Positions 3,430 through 32,399 of a stretch of 64,000 nucleotides of DNA are shown here, piece by piece. The first letter of the stretch is position 1; every line of letters begins with the position of its first letter. Origin of the DNA: Callorhinchus milii (taxonomy: Eukaryota); assembly GCF_018977255.1 (NCBI RefSeq), contig NW_024704755.1:15872001-15936000 (forward strand), written 5' to 3'. Below the pieces are notes generated by a model. The model made no database searches. It had not been told where the DNA came from and worked only from the letters and a program-made list of their open reading frames with translations. A program made the position numbers and the translations under genes.

Positions 3430-3680
3430 CCATCACTAGGAATGGATGGAAGATCGGCCACCGATGTTGGAAAGGAAGGGAGAGAACCCAACAGGAGGCC
3501 AGAGCCAGTGGAGTGGAGGCTGTGGGTACCGGAGTGGAGAGTAAACAGATTGGAGAGGTAGTGAGGGACAGTCAGGAAATGAGTGGTTATGTAAACCAGT
3601 GAGAGGATCTTGAAGTTGATCCGTCCTGTGATAAGGAGCCAGTGTGGCCTGGCAAGGCTTGGGGGGAGGGCGATTCACAG
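3430..3680 (-). mobile_element. L2-like LINE ORF2 fragment
   Basis: Homologous to the decayed LHWLP..RIDFKIL region of other L2 copies (gaggatcttgaagttgatcc). Confidence 0.5.
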
Positions 3681-4118: not shown

Positions 4119-7100
4119 ATGTTGGCGAGTGTTGTGTTTCAGTGTCTGTCTCTCATGTGGATCATTCCTAAAGGTTTGTCCTTATTCAATGTCACAGTTT
4201 GCTGAAAAAGGACAAGGATAAAGTTCTTATTCTAGTTTTATCCATTTATAGAGTAAATCTCATCTCTAACTTACTCTGTGTTTATCTCTTTGTCGCAGTA
4301 CTTTTGTTTCAAAACAATGTTTGAATTTATTTCTGACAGTTGCTGACGGGACATCGATCCAAGTAACTCAACATCCCGAACACATCGCTATAAACACTGG
4401 TGAAAATGTGAAGTTCTCCTGTAACTTCCCCGACACCAAGATTATAAAAACAAACTGGTGGAAGCAGGGAGAGAGTGAATACCTGAAAATTGATCACAAG
4501 AAACAATTTGATCAGAAAAGTGCAAGAAAGACTTCTCTCGAGCTCCTGGATGTGCGCCACCAGGATTCTGGAATCTATTACTGTGCAGCGATGACTGCGG
4601 GATATACAACAGTAAATGGAAGTGGATCACATTTAACGGTATATGGTAAGTATTGTTATAAGACTGAGAACTTAACTGTTATATATAATTGATCCATCAT
4701 TTACATTCATGTAAATTAATTTAATCATTTTGGGGGGAGAATCTTAAAGCGCTTTACAAAGGCTGAGGGGCTGCCGGAGCTGAGACCGAGGTGGGAGGGG
4801 AGAGTGGCCACAAGGACAGTCAAACTGGTGTGTCTTCAGGTGGGATTTGCGAGGAGAGAGGGAAGGGCGAGAAGGATGGATTTCGGGAAGGAATTCTAAA
4901 ACTTCGGGTCAACACAGCTGAACGTTCCCTCCACATGAACGTTTCCTAATCAGACACCCAACCGATCAAACTCTTTATTATAATTTACCATCTAAAATAT
5001 ACTTGTTCTTTTTATTCCCCCCACGCCAAGCTGTACCGTATAGCCTCATAGTCGTATGCATTACACCTCAGGTGCCATTTCTCTGCCCAGTCAACTAATC
5101 TGTCTCTATCGCCCTGAAGTGGCTTACAATCTTCTAATGACTAAATGACTGAAAGTTCTTCATTGTTAGTTACTCCGTATTTTGTGAATCATGTAAACTT
5201 GGACATTGTTCCTCTTATATTACAATCCAGACCATATATAAATGTCGAATTACCATAGGTTAGTGGGAGCTGACTTGAAAAATTACACTAAAATTTGATG
5301 ATGGGTTTCATCATTCACTTCATTGCTATTGGGACGTCCTCCCGATGTGAAAAGCGCTATATCAAATGCAAGGATTATTATTATTATTATCGTGAGATAT
5401 TTCTGTACACAGAATGGACAGCCACGCACGAAAGTAAATATAAGCAATACTCTTCATAATAAATCCTGTGAAGCGACTTGAGACTTGAAAAGGCGTTACA
5501 TAAAAGATTTTTATTGCAGTGCCTCCAATTCCTCTAAAAATTTCGTACAAAGAACGTCGAGGAGATTCATCTGTGTTTCTGACTCTCGTGTGTGAAACGG
5601 CCGCGTTTTACCCGAAAAATCTCACCTTCACATGGTCTAAAAACGGCACAGAAATTACAACTGGGATACATACCACTGAACGACAGAACACTGAGGGACT
5701 GTTTGAAGCTTCCAGCTCTGTGGAGGAGACACAGTCTGTCCAGAATGGGACAGTTTATACCTGTCGGGTGTCTCACATCAGCCTCCAGACTCCAGGAATT
5801 CGCAACTACACCATCTACAAGGTTTACCTTCCTGACAAAGGTAGGAATACAACAGTCTCAATGTCAATTAGCGTTAATTGTCTTTCACAAGAATATTTCC
5901 TTCTTTTAAATCACACCGCGAACCATAGCCATAAAATTTGCTTCATGTAAAATATAAACCACTTTCACCTTTTAATGCATAACATTTGAATTGTTATGAA
6001 TGCAAAATATCACTTGCCCTTGACAATATTAACCAGTCAGGTTTAAAACCTCTAATTTACAGTATATTGTAACCAAGAATGCGAGTATGAAACGTGAATT
6101 TCCACTCAATTTCTTAATTATTAGTAGATATTATGTTCCCTCTGTTTCCCCTCAGACCTGTCTTGAATAGCGCCATTTTATTAAATAACTTTAGTAAAAT
6201 GATCTGCTCTCAGGCTTTTTACAGTGATGCTTTTGTTCAAACTCAGTTCCCTGATCCCTGTGGAGCGGCAGTGAGACAGGAAGATATCTGTGCCGATGAT
6301 GGTGCTCAGGAAACCTTGTTTCACCTTATAATGGCGCAGCACATTGGAGCGTTTTGACCCGCGATTACAGTTTGGCTGCACTTGGGAACTTTTAATAGAT
6401 GTCTCTATCTACAGCTGTCTCCCTACAAAATAACTAACATACCTGCCCCCGATCTCCTTACTGATAATAAATATATTCACCCACAAAATATTGAGTCAAA
6501 AAACACTTTGCAATACAAGTTTCTTCGAAGCACTTTGAGACACCTGCATGATGTAACAAGGCACTATATCAAATGCAAGCATTACAATTTATTATTATTC
6601 CCAAGAGGTTTCATTGTCCACAGTTTCTCTCCACAAAATAATTAACTTGCTCTCCCATCTCCCTTACTGTTCAGTAAAAATGATTGAATACTTTATTTTA
6701 AAGGGATTAAGGGATATGGGGATAAGGCAGGGTTATGGTATTAGCAGGACTTAGATTAGAAGATCAGCCATGATTTATTGCCAGGGCAGGCTCGAAGGGC
6801 CGAATGGTCTACTCCTGCTCCTTTATGTAATGTTAAACAGATAAAACATAATCCGATGGCGAAGCAGGGGACAAGTCACATGAAACATTCCGGTTTTCAT
6901 TTGTTAGACATTGTTCTTAAATGGAAAAATATAACATTGTATTTTGTCCTAAAACGCTTTTTTTCTAGAGAATTGTGTCATTACTGAAACGGTAAACCAT
7001 CGGATCACAAAGTGCAGTTTCACCTCTCATCTCCCGGTGTCCAGGCCAACAATCCCCCAAATCAACTTGTTGGCTGATTCTATGATTGTAAGGCATTATT

Positions 7101-10100
7101 GTGCAGAAATTGGCTGCCACGTTTCGGCAAAAAATACACAATCTCAACATTTGACAGTATATCATGTGAAGTGCTTTGAGGTGCCTTGACAATGTGAAAA
7201 TATGTTGTGTAAAATGCAAGGATTATTACATCATTATTATGATCTTATATTGTTTTTATGGAAGAAAAGGATCGGCACCTATATCCATTACTGATCGCTG
7301 GATGTGCAGTGGGGGTGGCTGTTTTGGTGCTTTTGGTATACTTTGGGAATCGATCCAAATTAATGAAAATGAAAGGTAAGAATTTTGTTCTGGTTAATTA
7401 TGAATGCTTGATTTTGGTACATGTAGTTGTGAAAGTGCTAATAGTCCTTTGGTAACGCAGAGAGACTGTTTCTCAAAGAAAAATCGACCTGAAAGTTTGG
7501 GGATCCAATTGTTTTTCACTCTTTTCATTCTCCATTGGAGATTCAATAAAAATTTCAGTTATTATATTTCATTAATTTTAGGGGTACACAGGAAACAGAA
7601 TGATTTGGACCATCAGAGCCAACAGGTAATATCCATCCCAGGCAGTGTTTCATACCTAACATTAACATTGATTGATAACATTGAAAAGGATTGTGTTGTT
7701 TATAATTATTTGAGGATATTTTCAAAATGTTTCTTACCTGATTGCCCGCTTCACTATGTCATTGAAATTGTATTCACACATGTAACTCAGGTAACATAAT
7801 ATACAAGCCAACCAGTCTTGAGAAAACATTCCTTTACATTAAGGTAAAAGTTGAGAGTTGCAGTTTGTGATTTACAGGAAGTGCATGGAGGAGATGCTGA
7901 GAGGGTCACTTATATCACACTGGATTTGAAAAGTTCCAATAAACTTTCAAGACCGAAACATCAGGAAGACAGGACAGTGTACGCCAAGGTACAGCTGAAA
8001 AGCATTGCATCAACGCATACACAATCAAATTATTCTAAATGTAATACATTGTGCCTCATGTGCTCCATTTTGGGCTCGAGGGTATATAGAAATAAACTAT
8101 TTCCATTGTTTAAAGGCATCAGCAAATAGAGGACATGTATAAGATTGACATAAGGAGCAAAAGGAAAGTTTAGCAGATTTTTTCATACGATGTGCGGGTT
8201 TGGTAAGGTGGTAGAAGCAGATTTGTGTGTTTCAAGACAGAATTAGATAGGTACATGATATATATGCTTAACTAGGTATCTAGTCCGATTATGCAATTTT
8301 CGCATAAAGACCGAATGAAACTAAATTCTAATTCCTTGGCTTTTATAGATCAAGCAAAAAGCAGAAAATAACAAGCAGGTATATGCTTCTTTGGAGTTTT
8401 CTGGCCCAGAGAAAGGAGGAAAACCGAAGAGAAGCAAACCAAATACAGTGTATGCTACAGTGCAGGTGAGAAACTGTGAAGGGCAATAGAGGCCATTTAC
8501 AGTGAACCAAAAACAATGATGAATTGCATTAATAGGTTCAGGACCTAACCCTAACCCACACTCAGCCGAACTGCTTTCCAATTGGGTAATTAGCTATGGC
8601 CACCTGGATGATTTCCACCCGGTCTCTGCATGCGCGTTTTGGCTGCCGCCCCACCCTGAGTCTCCCGCTCCACTCTAAATATCTCTCCTCCCACCCCACT
8701 CTATGTCTCTCCTCCCACCCCCCTCTGTGTCTCTCCTCCTAACCCCGTCTAGCCGCTACTCCCCCTCTGTCCTTCTCTCCCACTGCACTCCCCGCCTTCT
8801 CTCTCTCCTTGATCCCATCACCACCTCCCTCTGCTCCAGCCTGGGCCTCCTCTGCTGGGCACATCATGGCTCCAGGCACTGGCTATCCCAGAGCAGCCAC
8901 CCCAAGTGACCAATCATTCACTCCCTCCACACAAACCGCTTCCTTAAGGCAAACCCAACTTCGCCCTCCCTCATACGCACCCTCCCCAACTCTCCACTCA
9001 CACCACTCTCCACAATCATCTCTCCTGTACACCCAAAATCCTCTCTGCATCACTCTCTGCTCCCTCCCCTCCTTCCAGCATCTCCAAACCCACCCGATAC
9101 CCCTCGTACAACAATCATCACCACCGCCTAAAAACCCAAACCCGGCTGCTCGAGCGCAGATGGTGGAAAACTGGCCTGACAGTTTACCGCCAATTGTGGC
9201 TCGGGCATCTCCACAGCTGCCGCTGTTCTTTGACACGCGCAAAAACAGCCTTCTACTCCAACATCATCTTGGAGGCTAAACACAAACCTAAAATCCTTTT
9301 TTCCAGCACCCACTAACTCCTGCGTGCCCCTCCTCAGAAGTCCTCAATCTTCATATCAAATGCCAAGTGTGACGGAGTCATGGATTTCTTTTCATCTAAA
9401 ATACATAACATCCGCCAGGCAGCCTCATCGACCTGCCTCTTGTCACCCATCACCATGCCCTCTCTGTTCCCCTCACCCTCCCCATCATCTGCTCCTACCA
9501 CCATCCCCATCCTGTAGCTCATCCCCATCCTGTGGAGTCCTGTAGCTCAGTGGTTACAGCACTCGCTTTACAAGCGAGAAACCTGAGTTCAATTCCAGGC
9601 ACAGGGCGAAACCTTGGGCCAGTTTCCTTACTCCACACACCTAATAATAATCCCTCCAAAACCAAAAACAATGATAAAATTGATCATTTTCAATCTACGA
9701 CTGTTTGTGGGACATCGCTGTGCGCAATTGGCTGCCGCGTTTGCCCACAAATATACAGTCAATTCACTTTACAATGTGCTCTGTGAAGCGCTTTGGGACG
9801 TCCTCCCAACGTGAAAAGCGCTATATCAAATGCAGGGATTATTATTATTATTATCCTACATTCCTCCTCCCCATCTCACCCTCCTCCTTCTTACCCACCA
9901 TCACCTCCACGAAACCCACCACCTGCTGCCTCGAACCCCTTCCCATCACCTTGCTGGTCACCCAGCTCCCCTCCTCTGTCCACTACTGGCTGACGTCATC
10001 AACCAGTCCCACTCCTCCGGATCAGTCCCTGACCCCCTCAAAACTGCTGTCATCAACCCCCCACCTCAAAAATACTTCCCTAGATCCCTCAAAGCCCAAC

Positions 10101-12094
10101 CACTGCCGCCCTATTTCTAACCTGCCCTTCCTCGCAAAAGTCCTGGAACGCGTTGTTATCAATCAATTTTGTGCACACCTCCTCCCACTCCCTCTTCGAA
10201 CCGCTCCAGTCCGGTTTCTGCCCACAGTACAGACACTGCACTTGTGAAAGTCACAAACGACATCCTCTATCTGTGACCGGGGCTCCCTCTGCCTTCTTGT
10301 CCTCCTAGACCTCTCCGCCATGTTCGACACAATTGATCACGCCATCCTCCTCCACCGCCTTTCCACCGTCATCCACCTCACTGGGACCGCACTCGCCTGG
10401 TTCAAGTCCTACCTCACAAACCGCCAGCAGTACATCTCCACAAATGGCTTCTCCTCCCGCTCTCACCCAGTTACCTGCGGGGCCCCCCAGGATCCATCCT
10501 TGGCCCCTCCTCTTTCTGACTTATATGCTCCCTCTTGGGGATGTCATCCGCAGAAATGGGGTACATTTCCACATGTATGCGGATGACACCCAGCTCTATT
10601 TTTCCACCTCTCATTGCGACCCCCAGTCCCCTGATGTTCTGTCAGCTGCCCGTCAGACCTCAGGGGCTGAATGAGCGCAAATTTCCTTCAGCTGAACATT
10701 GACAAGACAGAAGCCATACTCTTTGGCTCTCATCAATGTCTAAAATCTCATGATTCTCACCTCCTCCACCTACCCAACCTCCCCATAAAATTCTCTGAAC
10801 GCATACGCAACCTAACGATCAGGTTCGACCCCCAATTATCCTTCCTCCCCCACATCCAATCCCTCACCACCACTGCTTTCTTCCACCTCCGACGCATTGC
10901 CCGTCTCCACCAATACCTCTCTCCAAAAGCCACTGAAACCCTGGTCAATGCCTTTGTTACCTGTCAGCTGGAGTATTCAAATGTCCTCCTCACTTGCCTC
11001 CCCTCCACTATCATCCATAAAATTCAGGTTATTCAAAACTCTGCCGCCTGCATTCTCACCCACACCAAACTCCGCTCCCCAATTACCCCAGTCCTCACCA
11101 GACTGCACTGGCTCCCTGTCCCAGAGAGGATCGATTTCAAGATCCTCAGCCTTGTCTTGAAAACCCCCTGCCTCTCTGACCTCCTCCCTCCTCAAAACAA
11201 TGCCTGTTGCCTTCGTTCCTCCAGGTCTGGCCTCCTCCTTGTCCCCCAAGTCCTCTGCTCTACCCTCGGCAGCAGTGCCTTCAGCCACTATGCACCGAAG
11301 CTCTAGAACTCCCTTCCTCACTCCCTTCACCTTGTCCCCTCTCTTCCTATTTTCTTTGATGAAGATCTTTCTTTTTGACCGAGTCTTTGGTCACCTTCCT
11401 CCCGCTCTTCCTGGCTTGGCCTCGGGATCCATTACTGTGAAGCTCTGAGACGCCATCTGGCGTGGAGTGCACTATATGAATCTAAGTTGTTATTGTTGTT
11501 GTTGTTGATCTTTTGATATAGCTAGAAAATTATAGAATCATAGAGCTATACAGCACATAAGGAGGCCATTCAGGCCATTGTGTCTGTCCTGACTCTTTGA
11601 AAAGTGCTGTCCAAATCAATCCTATTCCCCTGCTCTCTGCCCTAACTCTGCAAACTTGTCCTTCCCAGATAATTTTTGACTTCTCTCTTAAGAGTTGTTA
11701 GAGGCTTCCACACCTTTTCAGGCAATGCATTCCAGATCCAAACAACTCGCTGTGTGAAAAAAATTCTCCTCGCTTCCTCTCTTTTTTTTAACAACTATTT
11801 TAAATTGGTGTCCTCAGGATATTGACCCACGCACCACTGGAAATAGTTTCTCCTTGTTCACTCTATCGAGTGCCCTCAAACTTTTGAAAGCTTAAAACTG
11901 TCAGTAGTTTATCAAAGTTGCACAAAAGGATAAGCTAACTATGTTCTGAAAAATTGGCTTTACAGGGCAAGCAAGGAGTAGCTGCTAACAAGCTGACATA
12001 CGCTGCTTTAGAATTTTCTGGCTCCAAGAAACCAGGAAAACCTAAACACAGCGACAAGAATACAGAGTATGCCAAGATACGGGTGAGAAAATAG
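4119..12094 (+). CDS. IgSF receptor A: leader-V(J-like)-C1-TM-cytoplasmic tail with 3x ITIM/ITSM (SIRP/NCR3-like inhibitory receptor), 397 aa
   Basis: Exons: 4119-4173 (leader [18 protein letters not shown]), 4340-4645 (V: [24 protein letters not shown]), 5520-5840 (C1: [24 protein letters not shown]), 7265-7375 ([25 protein letters not shown]), 7582-7625, 7878-7988, 8349-8465, 11966-12094 (TAG). All introns are GT-AG with compatible phases (1,1,1,1,0,0,0); 1194 nt total. Orthology is not established. Confidence 0.85.
7030..7240 (+). mobile_element. SINE 3' fragment just upstream of the TM exon of receptor A
   Basis: aattggctgcc..gtgaagtgctttgagg..aaatgcaaggattatta tail. Confidence 0.6.
8690..11510 (+). 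mobile_element. L2-clade LINE, frameshifted ORF2 (reverse transcriptase), interrupted by a SINE; inside the last intron of receptor A
   Basis: RT motifs [50 protein letters not shown] and [15 protein letters not shown] are spread over several frames; 3' (TTG)n tail near 11490-11507. Confidence 0.9.
9532..9854 (+). mobile_element. Full-length tRNA-derived SINE (about 320 bp) inserted in L2
   Basis: Head gtggagtcctgtagctcagtgg (A box) and gagttcaattcc (B box); L2-like tail gtgaaaagcgctatatcaaatgca followed by (ATT)n. Confidence 0.9.
11530..11890 (-). mobile_element. CR1 LINE 3' end
   Basis: atagaatcatagag..cagcacataaggaggccattc is the reverse complement of the CR1 3' terminus seen at 60313-60366. 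Confidence 0.7.
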
Positions 12095-12134
12095 AAAGGA
12101 GCAATGGAGGCCACCTCGATGGAACAGGATCCAC

Positions 12135-12455
12135 ATAATAATAATAATAATAATAATAATGTTGCATTTGATATAGTGCTTCCCAAAGGACGTCCCAAAT
12201 CGCTTCACAGAACACACTGTAAAGTGAATTGACTGTATATTTGTGGGCAAAAACGGCAGCCAATCACGCACAGCAAGGTTTCACAAACAGTCGTGGATTG
12301 AAGTGACCATTTTTTTTTCTGGAGGGATGATTATCAGGCGTGTGGACTAACAAAACTTGCCCAAGATTTCCTGCTGGAAATTGAACCCTGGCCTCTCGCT
12401 TGCAAGGCCTCTCGCTTGCAAGGCCAGTGCTCTAACCACCGAGCAACAGGACTCC
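12135..12455 (-). mobile_element. tRNA-derived SINE, 40 nt after the stop codon of receptor A
   Basis: Reverse complement of the 9532-9854 element; contains a 16-bp tandem duplication at 12391-12422. Confidence 0.85.
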
Positions 12456-13609
12456 GAATGTTACAATGATAGGTACAGAAGCTTAGTAGAGTACAGTACA
12501 GTATTAGTAATTCGATATAATTTGCAGTAATGCCTTACATTGCTAGTCTATAGCATCTGTCAAACACAACTATAGTTATTTGTGTCTTTAATCATTTCAG
12601 GCAGTTTCTTGTAGAAAAGTAGTCCTGGTTACATTTATTGCTGGACTTAAGTACTGATCAATGACATTTTATATTTATCTATTAAATCTAACTGGTGAAT
12701 TCTTTAATTCAGAAAGTGAACATTAAACAAGCCTCAAAAGCACAAACAATACTCAGTTTAAATATGTTTGGCATCATACTGTATTGTGTTTTATCACCTC
12801 TTTCAAAGTCATGCCTTATCATGTTCAATGAACATTTTCAATGAAGAACAATTCTGAAGCATAAATCATGTAATTTCTCCTTTAATTGGATTGTTTTTTC
12901 CATTTTCATGAAGTAATATGTGGTGTGGCTTGCAACCTGGTTAACAAAATATCAAAATAGCTCAAAATAGCTTAACTGATCTTCCAGCCGTGAAAAGTTT
13001 GATGTGTGGGTGTTCTACCCGTGAAGTATTGCTAAATGTACCTGACAGGAAGTAATTGGGCTCTCACTCATGTTGTTTTTGTGATAACTGTTCGATGATA
13101 CTGACACTAAATTATTCTGTTGCAAGTGTCTTCAATTCTCAGGCTAAATACAGAGTGCGGTTTTATGAACTTTTCTTTACCATTTCTGCATTATTCAGCA
13201 GTGTCTAGGCAGTTGCAGCTAATAGGCCTAAATTCTACCTATTGTCAGTCTTTAAGACTAATATATTTTTACAATTTAAGATTAATATATATTACAATGT
13301 GTAGACATTGCAACAGTTATAATCAGTTTTAATTTGAATGTCATTCCTTGTTAAGAATTACTGGAAACTGACTTCCTAGACTGTATTGAAGAATCTTGTA
13401 TGTTAGGCTAAATCTAAATGTAATTACAGGCCTCATGTTTCAGGGTTATGCAATCACAGACAGGTCATGACACTTCAAGAATAAACTCATTCTGCACATC
13501 TTTTTGTATTCTCTTTCATTATTTGTACACTCTATTGGATTCTACAGTGGGTTCACTTCAAACTCAAAATACTTAGGTTAAGTTGTTTGACACTATTGGC
13601 ACATGTTAA

Positions 13610-21484: not shown

Positions 21485-24145
21485 ATGACAAGTGTGGTCT
21501 TTCTGTACCTGTTTGCCCTGGAGATTATTTCTACAGGTATGTGTTCATTCTAAACCCCGCTCCTTTAAATTAGTTACCATATAAAACCCTACTCACTCAC
21601 CTTCCTTCTTCTCCTTGCACGAAAGACGATCTAAGAAATCAGTGTTTGTCTTTATTTTCTGACAGTTTCTGGCGATTCTTCGATCGAAGTGACTCAAATC
21701 CCCGACCATGTGGTTGTCATCAGAGGGACAAACGTTACCTTCCGCTGTATCTTTCCCTTCTCACAGGACGGTTCAGGAGTGGATGTGCAGTGGGATAAGG
21801 AGGGTGAGAGCGGGTATTTGGATACAAAGGAGGATAACAGGAAACTATTTGGTGTAAAAACTAAAGGAAGCGCCTTCTTCCAGTTCTTGAATGTGAATTT
21901 ACTGGACTCTGGAGTCTATCGCTGTGCAGTGGTCCGTCAGGAATCAATAATTGGAACAGGACCTGGATCGCGATTAACTGTGTGCGGTGAGTGTTTCACT
22001 TCCATTCTCCACCACATTCCCAATTTGCAGATATTATACAGCATATAATAAACCGGGATGAATGTTTCAAAGGTGTTTATACTGTGCATTTTTGTCGATT
22101 GTCAGCCTTAATATTAATTTCCCGGGGAAACATAAACATGAGTAAGAGCAGCAATCACAGAAAAATCATCAATATACTTTAGGAAATGCGTTTATAATTG
22201 GCATCAGCGCACATCAGCGCGTTGAAATGTATTACATTTGGTTTTATTCCACAATTTATATATATTGTGTTTTAAAATATGTTCAGTGCAAGTCAATGTT
22301 TAATTTCGAACTCTGCACAACTGAAACACAAAACTCAAGATACCACTAAACCAAATTACGATGTTTTATTAATCGTATTCAATGGGGCATTATTTCTTCC
22401 ATGATTTATTTCAGACTACAGCGACCGACACTGTGGGTGTAAATACAGTAATAGAACAAAATGTGATGTATTACATTATGACATGATGGAGCCTTTTGAG
22501 GACTGATAGAATGTAGTTCCTCATCAATTGCTGTATGAGATGTCTTTTCTCTTCGTTTTCAATCTTTAAAGTGCAAAGCTCTCGCTTTTTTATTATTGTT
22601 GTTGCATGCTGCCTACATAATTACTGAACCATCTAGTGAAAAAAAGATAGTCCTAGTGGTACNAAAAATAGTCTTTCATTTATAAAGAGAATGAGAACCA
22701 GCACAACTTGCTTTACTGAAGGCCAGACATTTCTAAAGCTGTGTGCATCTTTGGAATTATTAATAAAAGGGAGGTAGTGTGAATGATATGACTTAAACTT
22801 TATTTTTAAAATACAAAGTTAACAAACCTGAACATAAGCGGAAGTCGGTATGAGTTGGGAGTTGCAAGGAATTGTACACCAATCAAAATAAAATATATTC
22901 CTCCATCTGAGCCCAAATAACGAGAATCTGCACCATTATCTGTTCTGCAGTTCCCCCAACTCCACTGAAGATCTTTTCCAGGGCTCCCGAAAGAAGTTCG
23001 TCTGCATCGTTTTCTCTGGTGTGTGAAACGGCCGCCTTTTACCCCAAAGATTTCACCCTCACCTGGTATAGAAATGCCATCGAAATTATTCCATTGCTGG
23101 GTACAAGTGTGACAAAGATCGTCACTGCTGGACAACCGAATCCGGAGGGACTGTATAAAGTCTCCAGCTCTATGGAAGAGACACAGGTTGTCCAGATCGG
23201 GACTGTTTACACCTGTTTGATATCTCACTTAAGCCTCCGGACTTCAGCCATCGCCACCCACACCGTCACCCAAACTGCTCTGGGTAGGATGCCAACAATC
23301 TTACTGTCTGTTAGGCAGGTGCCAAATATGTTCCACATTGAAGAAGTACTACGGCACGGGTTTCCAGTAACTTTTGTTGAGACTAATTCGTAATTTAACT
23401 GGTAAATTATCTTCCTAAAAGTGGTCATGAATTTCAGGGGAAAAAAACGCAAATATTTTAGCCAACGCTGCTATAAAAAGCGATGGAATGAATATCATCA
23501 TATTTGTAATCAGTATTTTTTAAATCAAGTTACGAGAAATGCAAACTATTTCCTATGTAAGATGATGTTGGCCACGTTTCTGTTTACTTTCTTCCACGTT
23601 TGATTGCAGATTGTAGCTATTTTGAAGTATTTGTTGGTCCTATCCTCTCTGTTTATTGCTCTGCAGGGAATGGGAGTACATCGGTTTATTTCTTCATCTC
23701 TGGCTGTGTGGGGAGCGGATTTACAGTTCTAGTGCTGGCGATACTCATTGGAAAGGTAAGGCAATTAAACACCAACTATTTACATTTACATATCGCCTTT
23801 CCCATCTCAAAAGGCTTCGTACAACTGACGGGAGGAGGGGGGGAGTGGGGGGACGGGTGGAATCCCATCCGAAGAGATAACGCTTAAAGCTATTTTCGAA
23901 GACTGGGAGAGAGAAGAAGAGGACTTCAGTAGCGACACACTTTATGTTTTGCATTTTAGAACATTTTGAATCAAGTGCAAAAAGAGACTGCAGGTACGCA
24001 AAGGCCATATGTATACAACAAAATAATAACACAAGGGGAGACCCTTTTCATGCCCAGCTTTTCTTGTGCACTTATGCGAAAATATGTTCCTTTACAGACT
24101 GTGCAGACATCAGCGGCAATGTCAGGGCAGCGTGAGCTCCAATAA
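21485..24145 (+). CDS. IgSF receptor B: leader-V(J-like)-C1-TM-short tail without Tyr, 280 aa
   Basis: Exons: 21485-21536 (leader MTSVVFLYLFALEIIST), 21666-21986 (V: FRC..QWDK..DSGVYRC..GTGPGSRLTVC), 22951-23283 (C1: [23 protein letters not shown]), 23667-23755 (TM VYFFISGCVGSGFTVLVLAILIGK), 24098-24145 (TVQTSAAMSGQRELQ*). GT-AG, in frame, 843 nt. The last exon is the least certain. Confidence 0.8.
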
Positions 24146-27838: not shown

Positions 27839-30800
27839 ATGTTTGTAAAAATTGTACTTCAGTATTTTCCTGCACTGGGCATCATTTGCACAGGTATTTA
27901 GCTCTTTCTATCTCTCGTTTTAATTTGTTTCCCTATTCGTGACATAGGGAAAATGCTGGAAATTGGATTAATAAAAGAAGAGTAATTTGGTTGGTGTTGA
28001 TTCCATGGTTGAATAATTTCCCTCGCATAACATTTTTGTTTCTATATATAATTTATATTTATATTTTCTCTGACAGTTGCCGCCAATGCTCGCCTCACAG
28101 TGACCCAAACCCCTGAAAGCTCTATTGCGATCGTAGCTGCCAACGTTACCTTCAGGTGCATTTTCTCCCTTTCTGATAATTCTGCTGTGACTGTTGAGTG
28201 GTGGAAACTGGGCGAGAATGAGTTTCTCCAGCCGGGCTCAGACAGCAGGAAACGGTTCCTTACCCAGAGTGGGGAAGCTTCCCTTCAGCTCCTGAGTGTC
28301 AACCTCCAGGACTCAGCAGCCTATTACTGTGGAGTGAGATATCAAGGAAGAGGAATGACAAATGGAACTGGATCATCACTGGTTGTTCATGGTAAGTACA
28401 TGGGTGCTTTGTACTAGACATATTTTTAATTGCATAGGAATAACTAGAGGAATTTTGAATGATTTTCTTTGCTTCAAATAAAAAAGGAACTAAAAAAATT
28501 GTTTTTAAAATAATGTAATACAGTGCCTGGTCGCATCCGAAACACATTACAATATTACAATGAATTCACACTGTATTCTGCACACAGCAAGGTCATACAG
28601 AGAGAATTAGGTAAATTACTTTTTTAACCTAAAGAATTGTTCATAAAGGTCTTAGGAAAATAGGAGCTCTTTTCAAGTACCCAAATCTTTAAAGTCCATC
28701 TGAAGAGAGGTTGTAGAAAAACCTAATTTTAATACCTCCCCCAGTATTGCACTTGGCGTGTCAGTCTGATCTGTGAATCCATAATCTTCTATCCAGAATT
28801 TAGAGTGCAATCAACTGGGTAGAACTGGCACCCACATTACACATTCATTATAATGAAGATTAGCAACGTAACATGAATTATAAGCACAAGATAGATTACA
28901 TCACCTCTGAAACGTGATTCTATTTTAATCCTTATTCTTGGTCTTATTTGGCTGGTGAGAAGTTATATATGACCTATGTTCACTCACGCAAGACAAATAG
29001 TGGAATAATTAAAAAATGTGATCAGGTTTTGCGACAGCCCCAATAAACATGTAAAAACATAAAAGTTGTTCTGACTTTATCTGACGTTGTGTCATTCCAG
29101 CTGCTGTTAAAGTTAAATAGAATTCAGTCTCTCCAGAGCTGAAGATATTTCAGACTAAAGTGCCTGTGTCTCTTAGGCCTGGCTGCATTTATAATTCCTC
29201 AGTGTCTCTTTGTCTCAGTGTCTCAGTGTCAATTCCACGAATGACCAGTGAGAAACTCCATCTGGATACACAGATTTACACAGAATAGCATAATTGTACA
29301 GAATTACACTATTTATGGAACATTTCAATGACCAGAATTTGGCAAATTGTTGAATTCAGTCTTATCTTTGAGGCTGTTATCTGTAGTTCTTAAAATAACT
29401 TACACAAAAAGGTGGCTTCAAAATCAAAGATGTATTAAAGAATTTGCTAAATTCTGTATGTTCAATAATGCCACATTAGTGTAGAAGATCTAGATCCAGG
29501 CTAAATTACACCCTCCTGAAAAGTATCTTGAGTTGAGGGTAAACGGGGAGTCCTTGGAATTGAACTGGTTCAAATGTGACATGTTTGGCAACTGAATGTC
29601 AGACCAGAGCCAGACAGATTCGCAGGACTCCTGGGCATTGCTGTTGAAAAACAATTGTCCCCGCCCTGACCCCAGCTCAGGTTTGAAATGCTGTACACTG
29701 TCTAGTGCCTTGGGACGTCCTCCCGACGTGAAAGACGCTATACAAATGTAATCTTGCTGTTGTTAACTCTGCAAGTCAAAGCCCTAACAGATAGGATGGT
29801 CCTCGCAGGGGGAAAGCTTGCCCGACAGTTCTATCAATGGTAAGCTATGCGATTTTAGCTGGTTAGGCTCCAGCAGTTACCTCAACCACATTCTGGGGTA
29901 CCCAAATCTTGGCTCTTGTCAATTAGCGCCTAAGTTCCAGAAATAGGTGAGCAGGGTGCATCCCTGTGGCACAGTTTGTATCCTCTAAAGCATGGTGATT
30001 GGTCTCCACTTGGGTCAGAAATCTGTCTGCCCCCCAAAAAAAAATTATCCTGCAATCAAAATAACAACGAGAAGCAGTCTATTCCGCGGTTACATTTCCT
30101 GTTCATTGATGGAATTTACATTGAATTTGTTTCATGAGTAACAACTGAAAAGTGGCTCTAGTGATAAATTTGTGCTGTTTTCCCCTGACATATGCTTCAT
30201 AGTTCTTTGATATTCACAAGCGCAGAAATATGCATGGAGATTTTTTTGATCTCTTATATAACAATTAAAGTGTGAAAGTTGAAATTTTCAAAGATTAGGT
30301 ATCAATTTTGATGAAACATAATTAATTACAATAGTTCAGAGGGAAGAATGAACCTCTCTCTAACCACAATGTATTGCAAATCATGGTTGAGCAATTTGAT
30401 CTTGTTTTTGGTCAGCCAGGTGTCTGACACATGCAGAAACCCATGATCATGATAAAGAGAATCCACCCAAACTGATATTTCTAGGTATCTCACCTTCACA
30501 TGGAAATTCCAGAGATAGATTGTTGGAATGGAATACACACTCTCTCCCTAGAGAGACACATCCTGCTTAACTAATTCCAGAAAGTATTAGGTGCAAGTTG
30601 GCAAGAGCCAAGACTTGGGGACCTCAGAGTGTGCTTTAGGGTAACAGCTGGAGTCTAACCAGCTAAAACTATATAGCCTGCCATTAATATCGCTGTCTGG
30701 CAAACTTCCCGCAACTTGTCCAGATAGCACCACCCTACTCGTTGGGGATTTGCCTTGCAGAGCTAACAGGAGGATTCTTTGCCCTAATGATTGGTGTGAT

Positions 30801-31904
30801 TTTCCAAGTCCTCCCAAGAGCTAGGTTGGCAGTGCTATGATCAGCAGTGCCCTGGAGTACTGCAGATCCACTTTGCTCAGGAACCGGATAAGCAACACCC
30901 AAACTGATATTTCTAGGTATCTCACCTACACATGGAAATTCCAGAGATAGATTGTTGGAATGGGATACACACTCTCTCCCTAGAGAGACACATCCTGCTT
31001 AACTAATTCCAGAAAGTATTAGGTGCAAGTTCATTGCCAAACATGTCACCTTGGAGCTAGTTCAGCTCCAAGGAGACCCCAGTTACATCCCCCTCCCCCA
31101 AGGAGGATAGGAGGGAAGGAATGGTTACAGCAGAAATTAATAAAGTACATTTCAATTACAAAGTCTTCAATTTATTACATCACTAATTCCTTCTCTAATC
31201 TGTCTTTCCACAGCTCCCCCGATGCCTCCTTGGATAGTCTCCACAGTGTCTGATGGGAACTCGACCACTTCTCTGACTCTAGTTTGTGAAACGGATGGGT
31301 TTTACCCAGAGGATATCATTGTCACTTGGTATAAAGATGATAAGAACGTTTTCACTGTAAATACAAGAAAGCAGCTTTGGAGAGATGGGAGAGGTTATAA
31401 AGCTTTGAGCTCCTTGGAAGAGACACAGCCTGTGCAGAGCGGGGCTGTTTACACCTGTCTGGTATCTCACCTAAGCCTCAAGACGCCAATCATTGCTATT
31501 TACTCTGTTTCTGGTTCCTATCCAGGTATACTTATTTTATCCTTCTAAATCATGTCTGCTGATAACTTATTTTCACTATTTCTATGTGACCACCACCCCA
31601 ACCCCCACCACCCCACCCTGTCCATATCAACAGAACAGAATTAACCATCATATAACGTTCCTGTTTTGTAACATATCTGAGCTATTCGACACCACGTGTG
31701 CTGTGCCATCATCATTCCTCCGAGAAAATGACGTATTTTATTTATTTGTAAACACTACATAGGTTATATATCGTTAGTACTTATTTTGCAGCTGCTGATC
31801 TCAGGATGCCGGTGGCTATGATTCCTCGGTTAATTCTGTGTTTATTGTTGGTGCTGGTGTTGACAGTTATCATTGTGGATTATCATAAAATCAACTCTAT
31901 TTAA
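27839..31904 (+). CDS. IgSF receptor C: leader-V(J-like)-C1-TM with Arg, 8-aa tail (activating type), 264 aa
   Basis: Exons: 27839-27893 (leader MFVKIVLQYFPALGIICT), 28077-28391 (V: FRC..EWWK..DSAAYYC..NGTGSSLVVH), 31214-31525 (C1: CETDGFYP..TWYK..YTCLVSHLSL), 31792-31904 (AADLRMPVAMIPRLILCLLLVLVLTVIIVDYHKINSI*). All introns are phase 1 GT-AG; 795 nt. A GTAAG donor at 31907 implies a further non-coding exon. Confidence 0.85.
29767..30762. repeat. Unclassified repeat of about 160 bp present as a diverged inverted pair
   Basis: 29767-29920 aligns to the reverse complement of 30601-30762 (roughly three-quarters identity by eye); a partial third copy lies near 37889-37945. Confidence 0.7.
30464..31031. 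repeat. 136-bp direct repeats flanking a 296-bp insert (intron of receptor C)
   Basis: 30464-30599 and 30896-31031 differ at about 2 positions. Confidence 0.9.
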
Positions 31905-32399
31905 AGGTAAGATATTCACTGATTCATTGCCACCGTCCCCCCCACCAACAACATTTTAAATCTATAAATATTTATAGTAGTGACATCATCTTAAATGCAA
32001 TTTCATCCTTGATAAAATCACGAGTCCAGCGCATAATATGGAATGAAGATGCTTTGTTATATTGGATGATGATTAGTGGATAAATAATAATTATTGACTC
32101 ATGATTGCTTTGGATATAGTACCATAAAGTTGAAAAATCTTAAAGTGCTACACATGGCAAGGTCCTTCAAACAGTCATAAAGTAAATTGTTTGTTTGGGC
32201 AAGTACTCAGTCACTATACTTTACAGGTCATCCTACTGTCTGCCTGGCTCAATCAATACACTTGCCACGAAGTTAAACCATGATTCTCTCTGTCAGTTTA
32301 GGTGGATGCAGCATACAGGAAGTGGCATCAGTGGCAACCTGATGACTCTAAAGTTGGCCAATTTTGGGAGATGGAAAGACAGCTAAGTACCAGAAAGCA

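Follow-up and report, generated by a model that had tools for sequence, protein, structure and literature searches.

Structure of the receptor A gene

A gene referred to here as receptor A, whose predicted product resembles the inhibitory receptor SIRP-alpha, was identified in a 64,000-nucleotide stretch of the elephant-shark genome (Callorhinchus milii; RefSeq assembly GCF_018977255.1, contig NW_024704755.1, positions 15,872,001 to 15,936,000 of the forward strand). This whole stretch is referred to as the window, and coordinates below are positions within it. Joining of the eight exons of receptor A yielded an open reading frame (ORF) of 397 amino acids with zero stops, encoding a leader, a V-set immunoglobulin (Ig) domain, one C1-set Ig domain, an uncharged transmembrane (TM) segment and three cytoplasmic tail modules (m1, m2, and m3; Table 1). 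These results showed that the eight-exon gene is intact, both in its reading frame and in its gene structure. Together with the analyses presented below, they make it likely that receptor A is an intact C. milii SIRP-alpha-like receptor in which an extra distal exon was added to an old two-module tail, with all three modules predicted to be present in one mRNA and to dock the phosphatases SHP-1 and SHP-2.

The first 16 residues encoded by the leader exon were 69% identical to the leaders of two paralogues (P0016 and P0028). Pfam analysis of the V exon (4342-4644) yielded matches to V-set (E=1.6e-10) and I-set (E=9.5e-11) domains, and the exon terminated in GSGSHLTVY, a J-like G strand, giving the N-terminal V-set domain that characterizes the SIRP family. 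Matches of the C1-set exon in the PDB included Ig constant domains as well as SIRP-gamma; the domain matched SIRP-gamma with E=1e-11, but Ig heavy chains scored better. No second Ig exon was found between the C1 exon and the TM exon by tblastn with family proteins. The hydrophobic core of the TM exon contained no K, R, D, or E, corresponding to the uncharged TM segment expected of inhibitory receptors, and the segment was 75-87% identical to the TM segments of two related proteins (P0021 and P0001).

The phase-0 start of the tail at 7878 is explained by a cytoplasmic micro-exon (7582-7625), which bridges it to the phase-1 end of the TM exon. The acceptor of this micro-exon (7581) was the best acceptor in the intron between the TM exon and 7878. 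In addition, the micro-exon is included in the predicted protein XP_007904055.1 and is conserved in the paralogue loci LOC103185939 (L001) and L002, which encodes XP_007902824.2. Two other ways of entering the tail were rejected: direct splicing of the TM exon to 7878 leads, because of the phase-1 end of the TM exon, to a junction that runs into a stop, and an alternative acceptor at 7863 kept the frame, but had a poor pyrimidine tract.

Sequence and register of the tail modules

A first-pass annotation of this DNA had described three tail exons that all start in phase 0 and have tyrosines at codons 12 and 35. Translation of the exons agreed with this description for all three, with AG acceptors and GT donors in place, and also recovered the proposed motifs VTYITL/TVYAK, QVYASL/TVYATV, and LTYAAL/TEYAKI. 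The six tail tyrosines thus formed three pairs, with spacings of 23/14/23/16/23 residues. No fourth module was found in the 64-kb window by permissive tblastn.

Motifs were compared with the consensus sequences S/I/V/L-x-Y-x-x-I/V/L for the ITIM (immunoreceptor tyrosine-based inhibitory motif) as well as T-x-Y-x-x-V/I for the ITSM (immunoreceptor tyrosine-based switch motif; PMC8631942). Five of the six motifs were canonical: VTYITL and LTYAAL fitted the ITIM consensus, while TVYATV, TEYAKI, and the junction-dependent TVYAKI fitted the ITSM consensus. The earlier reading of the tail as three ITIM plus ITSM modules therefore held for these five motifs, but not for QVYASL, and for m1 it depends on splicing of m1 to m2. 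TVYAKI is completed by codon 1 of m2, which encodes the isoleucine, so that this ITSM exists only across the m1-m2 junction; a splice from m1 to m3 would instead yield TVYAKG and leave m1 without an ITSM. The matching position reads TVYAQT in most relatives, so that the insertion of m2 also made a canonical ITSM of the TVYA-x-T motif that comes before it.

As far as the counterpart of the m2 donor, m3 spans 11966-12082; RVRK and a stop (12092-12094) follow. A donor-like CGG/GTGAGA (the slash marks the splice position) at 12083 lies inside the m3 exon, and ATTAAA and AATAAA sequences occur downstream of m3 at 12681, 12722, and 13480.

Table 1. Exons of receptor A and the intron between its last two tail modules (slashes in donor sequences mark the splice position).
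Feature	Position	Strand	Description
Leader (signal peptide) exon	4119..4173	+	ATG at 4119; ends in phase 1; donor aaag/gtttgt
V-set Ig domain exon, J-like G strand	4340..4645	+	Phase 1 in and out; splice sites present
C1-set Ig domain exon, sole C1 exon of receptor A	5520..5840	+	Phase 1 in and out; splice sites present; Pfam C1-set E=2.2e-14
Transmembrane exon, uncharged TM segment	7265..7375	+	Ends in phase 1; donor aaag/gtaaga, score 10.8
Cytoplasmic micro-exon, 44 nt	7582..7625	+	Phase 1 to 0; cag/gtaata donor at 7626
Module 1 (m1), proximal type, 37 codons	7878..7988	+	VTYITL (ITIM), TVYAK+I
Module 2 (m2), most likely added distal-type copy, 39 codons	8349..8465	+	QVYASL, TVYATV (ITSM)
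m2-m3 intron, 3.5 kb	8466..11965	+	About half interspersed repeats; without AATAAA or ATTAAA
Module 3 (m3), distal type, terminal exon	11966..12094	+	LTYAAL (ITIM), TEYAKI (ITSM)

Homology and origin of the modules

Similarity between the module exons was strongest for m2 and m3, for which blastn aligned 8289-8495 with 11909-12113 at 68% identity over 208 bp (E=6e-24) and protein identity was 55-57% (E ~1e-10). Corresponding values for m1 and m3 were 63.6% over 132 bp (E=1e-7) and, at the protein level, 37-41%. When the m2 and m3 flanks were analyzed alone, the 60 bp upstream were 60% identical and the 30 bp downstream 81% identical, values that were both reached in 0 of 500 shuffles. Similarity between m2 and m3 ended at -60, with none beyond, and the flanks of m1 were only marginally similar to those of m3. 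Alignment of exons and flanks thus showed that the three module exons are homologous far beyond chance and that the flanks of m2 and m3 are homologous as well. The similarity earlier noticed in the introns around the last two exons was confirmed, with an extent of about 60 bp on the upstream side and 30 bp on the downstream side, and the short intron strings quoted for it were present.

A triplication of a single exon within receptor A, the origin first proposed for the three modules, was rejected by an approximately unbiased (AU) test of their single-clade origin (p-AU 0.002), which leaves m2 as the sole added copy. In a tree of 45 modules, proximal (m1-type) modules were split from distal-type modules with a support of 93/90; m1 grouped with modules that come first in the tails of shark and chimaera proteins, and m2 and m3 fell among the distal modules. 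By this sequence comparison, the proximal and distal module types were shown to predate diversification of the family and to be shared with sharks and other elephant-shark paralogues. The common tail of the family consists of two modules, one proximal and one distal, as in SIRP-alpha, an organization that is probably also ancestral. Most likely, m2 originated as an additional copy of the distal exon, which used to be the terminal one. This distal origin of m2 was concluded not from the tree but from the higher exon and protein similarity of m2 to m3, the homology of the flanks, its length of 39 codons, and the position of its donor. Since the proximal/distal split is older and m2 appears to be an extra distal copy, the history of the tail would be that of an old two-module tail with a later addition rather than a triplication.

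The paralogue L002 may indicate how a terminal exon could become an internal one. The terminal module of XP_007902824.2 continues past its ITSM via VGANRAAVEATFN, which is homologous to the apparently intronic sequence after m2 and m3 in the window; for m3, the sequence downstream of the module is thus homologous to a coding C-terminal extension. Because the terminal module of L002 reads through these homologous codons, the downstream flank similarity of m2 and m3 can be interpreted as a relic of a terminal-exon coding extension. The codons after the m2 ITSM, CAG GTG AGA (Q-V-R), also constitute a consensus 5' splice site (CAG/GTGAGA, score 10.9). As these codons double as a splice donor, a copy of the terminal exon would have been usable as an internal exon at once, which provides a concrete route for tail growth, from terminal exon to internal exon, through coding sequence.

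As a tentative extension of this scheme, the distal exon might be 'duplication-ready', in the sense that each tandem copy is at once a spliceable, in-frame, and symmetric cassette. If so, this property would explain the occurrence of one to four tandem-SH2 docking units, trimmable by skipping, in the SIRP-like clusters of cartilaginous fish. In the oldest jawed vertebrates, inhibitory strength would then be set by a 'dial' of module copy number and splicing, and the same property might also have been the route to the two pairs of SIRP-alpha itself.

Inclusion of the middle exon

The splice sites of m2, with scores of 3.7 for the acceptor and 10.9 for the donor, were the strongest of the three modules. 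Two independent Gnomon models splice m2 in: XP_007904055.1 for receptor A and XP_007902894.2, which includes m1 and m2, for its paralogue. In addition, the ORF and both tyrosines of m2 were retained in two paralogues, and m2 was more conserved than its flanks. These observations argue against non-constitutive use of m2, by which the exon would either be skipped, yielding an m1+m3 tail, or serve as an alternative last exon, so that the three-pair protein would be rare or absent. As an alternative last exon, m2 would read through to a stop eight codons past its donor (QVRNCEGQ-stop).

Several features of the locus are nevertheless consistent with such use. The middle exon derives from a terminal exon and retains an in-frame stop shortly past its donor, it is followed by a 3.5-kb repeat-laden intron, the module exons are all symmetric, one shark isoform skips a module, two modules are the commonest state in the family, and the first motif of m2 is non-canonical. 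However, the intron that follows m2 contains neither AATAAA nor ATTAAA anywhere along its 3.5 kb, and skipping of m2 would destroy the m1 ITSM. Both skipping of m2 and its use as an alternative last exon were therefore considered unlikely, and constitutive inclusion of all three modules remained the preferred reading.

Of the m2-m3 intron, 48% matched other sites in the window. Among its repeats were a unit resembling a short interspersed nuclear element (SINE; 9522-9868), for which as many as 14 overlapping blastn matches lay in other parts of the window, and a second unit of 921 bp (10232-11152). A Pfam search of the intron ORFs (9705-11303) yielded no match at E<=0.01, and thus no reverse transcriptase; the repetitive nature of the intron is therefore established, while a label as long interspersed nuclear element is not. 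The SINE-like repeat, about 250-330 bp long and with an (AAT)n run, was observed at 9522-9868, at 12135-12394, and at no fewer than a dozen other sites in the window. One copy is located directly after the m3 stop and another in the m2-m3 intron.

Because all module exons are symmetric and in phase 0, skipping of any one of them would be frame-neutral. Compared with isoform X1, a RefSeq isoform of Heterodontus francisci (XP_067905924.1) is missing precisely one module of 37 residues. In view of exon symmetry and this isoform, the 'tunable' tail suggested by the first-pass annotation is plausible.

Relatives, paralogues and gene integrity

A profile of the three modules was searched against 1.84 billion representative proteins (E<=0.001). 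All 20 matches were from cartilaginous fish (C. milii, H. francisci, Heptranchias perlo, Scyliorhinus torazame, and Mustelus asterias), and no tetrapod or teleost relative of the module was found in this set at this threshold. A full-length search with one family protein (P0022) likewise returned chondrichthyan proteins only. Many members of the family have been named 'tyrosine-protein phosphatase non-receptor type substrate 1-like' by NCBI, which corresponds to SIRP-alpha-like. Most of the family proteins found had a V-C1 organization, and a few were without a C1 domain.

Counting of modules in other species, a check proposed along with the original description of the tail, showed that chondrichthyan relatives carry one to four. 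Most family proteins had two modules, some had three, one had four, and two had a single module; examples are XP_007902825.2 with two, XP_007902824.2 with three, and XP_067906074.1 from Heterodontus with four. An organization with one module per exon is characteristic of the family in the loci that were read. L002, for instance, shares the micro-exon with receptor A and has a separate exon for each of its three modules. In the four-module tail of XP_067906074.1 (P0003), modules 1 and 3 were identical in sequence, as were modules 2 and 4; this pattern is explained either by a very recent tandem duplication of two modules as a unit or by an artefact of assembly or annotation.

The best match to the profile was XP_007904055.1 (P0001; C. 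milii LOC103186685), an older Gnomon model. Its sequence is nearly the same as that of the window, and it has precisely the TM segment, the micro-exon, m1, m2, and m3. The exon chain of receptor A is thus already present in a public, uncharacterised prediction. At its N-terminus, this model is a chimera that includes the upstream gene's tail, and an ORF segment at 3453-3569 of the window is used in it to fuse the tail modules of that gene onto receptor A. In view of the genuine leader at 4119-4173, the fusion looks like a prediction artefact.

The paralogue L001 was about 80-86% identical to receptor A at the nucleotide level, with the same micro-exon, m1, and m2. Identity between the paralogous exons (85.5%) exceeded that of the flanking introns (75-81%). 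Between the two genes, m1 showed 93.7% nucleotide identity and a ratio of non-synonymous to synonymous substitution rates (Ka/Ks) of 0.35, while m2, whose ORF and both tyrosines were kept in L001, had a Ka/Ks of 0.43; the value for m1 and m2 combined was 0.42. The third and fourth modules of L001 (20931-21060 and 21651-21790 in the coordinates of that locus) are decayed, the third being truncated before its second tyrosine, with AVYTEI out of frame. This decay indicated that extra modules are not always maintained.

Several points weigh against the interpretation of receptor A as an intact, three-module inhibitory receptor. L001 has four module-like exons, of which the third is frameshifted and the fourth, the counterpart of m3, carries two in-frame stops. 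No current NCBI protein was found for exactly receptor A; its exon chain is known from computational models alone, of which the one for receptor A is old and N-terminally chimeric. The deviation of Ka/Ks from 1 for m1 and m2 combined was not significant (Fisher p=0.06). Forcing of m2 into the proximal group was not rejected by the AU test (p-AU 0.36), so that the tree alone is also compatible with a proximal origin of this module. At -2, QVYASL has a Q where the ITIM consensus calls for a hydrophobic residue. Finally, that SHP-1/2 would bind the predicted docking pairs is something we purely infer.

The state of the later modules of L001, the retrieval of no current NCBI protein for exactly receptor A, and the non-significant Ka/Ks would also fit an alternative in which receptor A, as part of a receptor cluster with fast turnover, is a copy that is not expressed or is decaying, and its three-module tail is functionless. 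This was judged very unlikely, as all eight exons are open and have usable splice sites, the leader is conserved, the Ig domains retain their Pfam signatures, and exons are more conserved than introns.

Predicted signalling by the tail

In the proposed mechanism, all three module exons would be spliced into one mRNA, Src-family kinases would phosphorylate the tail tyrosines, and each phosphorylated pair could then dock the tandem SH2 domains of SHP-1/SHP-2. The number of docking units per receptor would thereby be at most three, falling to two on skipping of the middle cassette. A third pair might add to inhibition. The stronger claim of the first-pass annotation, that the tail is unusually strong, was not borne out: since tails in the family hold one to four modules, three are not exceptional. 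The three-module tail is one more state of a variable family trait, notable mainly for its combination with an intact ectodomain.

Alternatively, the tail could be real while SHP-1/SHP-2 are not its main route, and signalling could instead proceed via SAP/EAT-2-type adaptors at TxYxx(V/I) or via Csk, SHIP, or Grb2. The output would then not have to be a simple graded inhibition. ITSMs have been reported to bind SH2D1A and SH2D1B in some receptors (PMC8631942) and one of the three ITIM positions is non-canonical, as would be consistent with such a route. However, ITIM and ITSM alternate and are spaced by 23 residues, in agreement with the layout for bivalent tandem-SH2 docking, and the TM segment is uncharged. 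Moreover, QVYASL and LTYAAL, two of the ITIM-type motifs, both have alanine at pY+1, which is a feature of ITIMs that recruit SHP1 (PMC8631942). Signalling mainly through partners other than SHP-1/SHP-2, and with it a departure from graded inhibition, was therefore considered quite improbable, and docking of these phosphatases remained the favoured mechanism.

In cartilaginous fish, the SIRP-alpha-style docking unit, in which an ITIM and an ITSM are separated by about 23 residues, corresponds to a discrete exon module. This module was copied, lost, and possibly skipped in evolution, so that receptors that are otherwise similar form a natural series with one to four units. Provided that the three-unit protein is expressed, this series could serve as a simple comparative system for whether inhibitory signalling scales with the number of docking pairs. 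The general view of inhibitory receptor function is unchanged by these findings.

Neighbouring genes and other features of the window

Two further SIRP-like genes are present in the window. Receptor B (21665-23700) comprises a V exon (~21665-21985), a C1 exon (~22950-23267), and, near 23681, a hydrophobic ORF that resembles a TM segment; downstream of this gene, the window yielded no ITIM/ITSM module. Receptor C (28076-31951) has a V exon at ~28076-28390 and a C1 exon at ~31216-31509. Several long N runs, either assembly gaps or masked stretches, occur between 46142 and 49116.

Comparison with known inhibitory receptors

A literature search yielded nothing relevant on chondrichthyan SIRP-like tails or on ITIM exon duplication, and the paper on UrIg (PMC12227049) contains no mention of ITIMs or SIRP. 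Among receptors from cartilaginous fish, the SIRP-like V-C1 receptors of elephant shark and sharks share with receptor A the order of their domains, the micro-exon, the proximal and distal modules, and, where loci were read, the presence of one module per exon; they differ in module count, which ranges from one to four. Receptor A and LOC103185939 have in common a distinct middle module starting with IKQKAE, unlike other members of the family. Of these two genes, receptor A alone keeps three full modules, whereas the later modules of its paralogue are frameshifted or stop-bearing.

In PD-1 and BTLA, ITIM and ITSM are spaced by 25 residues, a distance believed to let a single tandem-SH2 phosphatase bind bivalently (PMC8631942). 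The spacing of 23 residues in receptor A is similar, as had been proposed for known receptors of this type, and the order of ITIM followed by ITSM is the same. However, PD-1 and BTLA have a single pair and an unrelated, V-only ectodomain, whereas the pair in receptor A is a repeated exon unit.

Mammalian SIRP-alpha (SHPS-1, PTPNS1), compared here via published motifs, resembles receptor A in its N-terminal V-set domain, which has a J-like strand and precedes a C1-set domain, in its uncharged TM segment, and in its alternating ITIM/ITSM tail. Its tail contains ITYADL/TEYASI and LTYADL/SEYASV, with 24-26 residues per pair (bioRxiv 10.1101/2021.08.06.455421) as compared to 23 in receptor A, and the parallel drawn earlier between the two tails was supported by this alternating order. 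The receptors differ in that receptor A has one C1 domain (V-C1) and SIRP-alpha two (V-C1-C1), and in that receptor A has three pairs, each on its own phase-0 exon, versus two pairs in SIRP-alpha. In addition, receptor A has one non-canonical ITIM position, and all of the database relatives found are chondrichthyan, with no orthology detected outside cartilaginous fish. By analogy, and with these differences, receptor A, a candidate rather than an established member of the SIRP family proper, looks functionally like an inhibitory receptor of the SIRP-alpha type.

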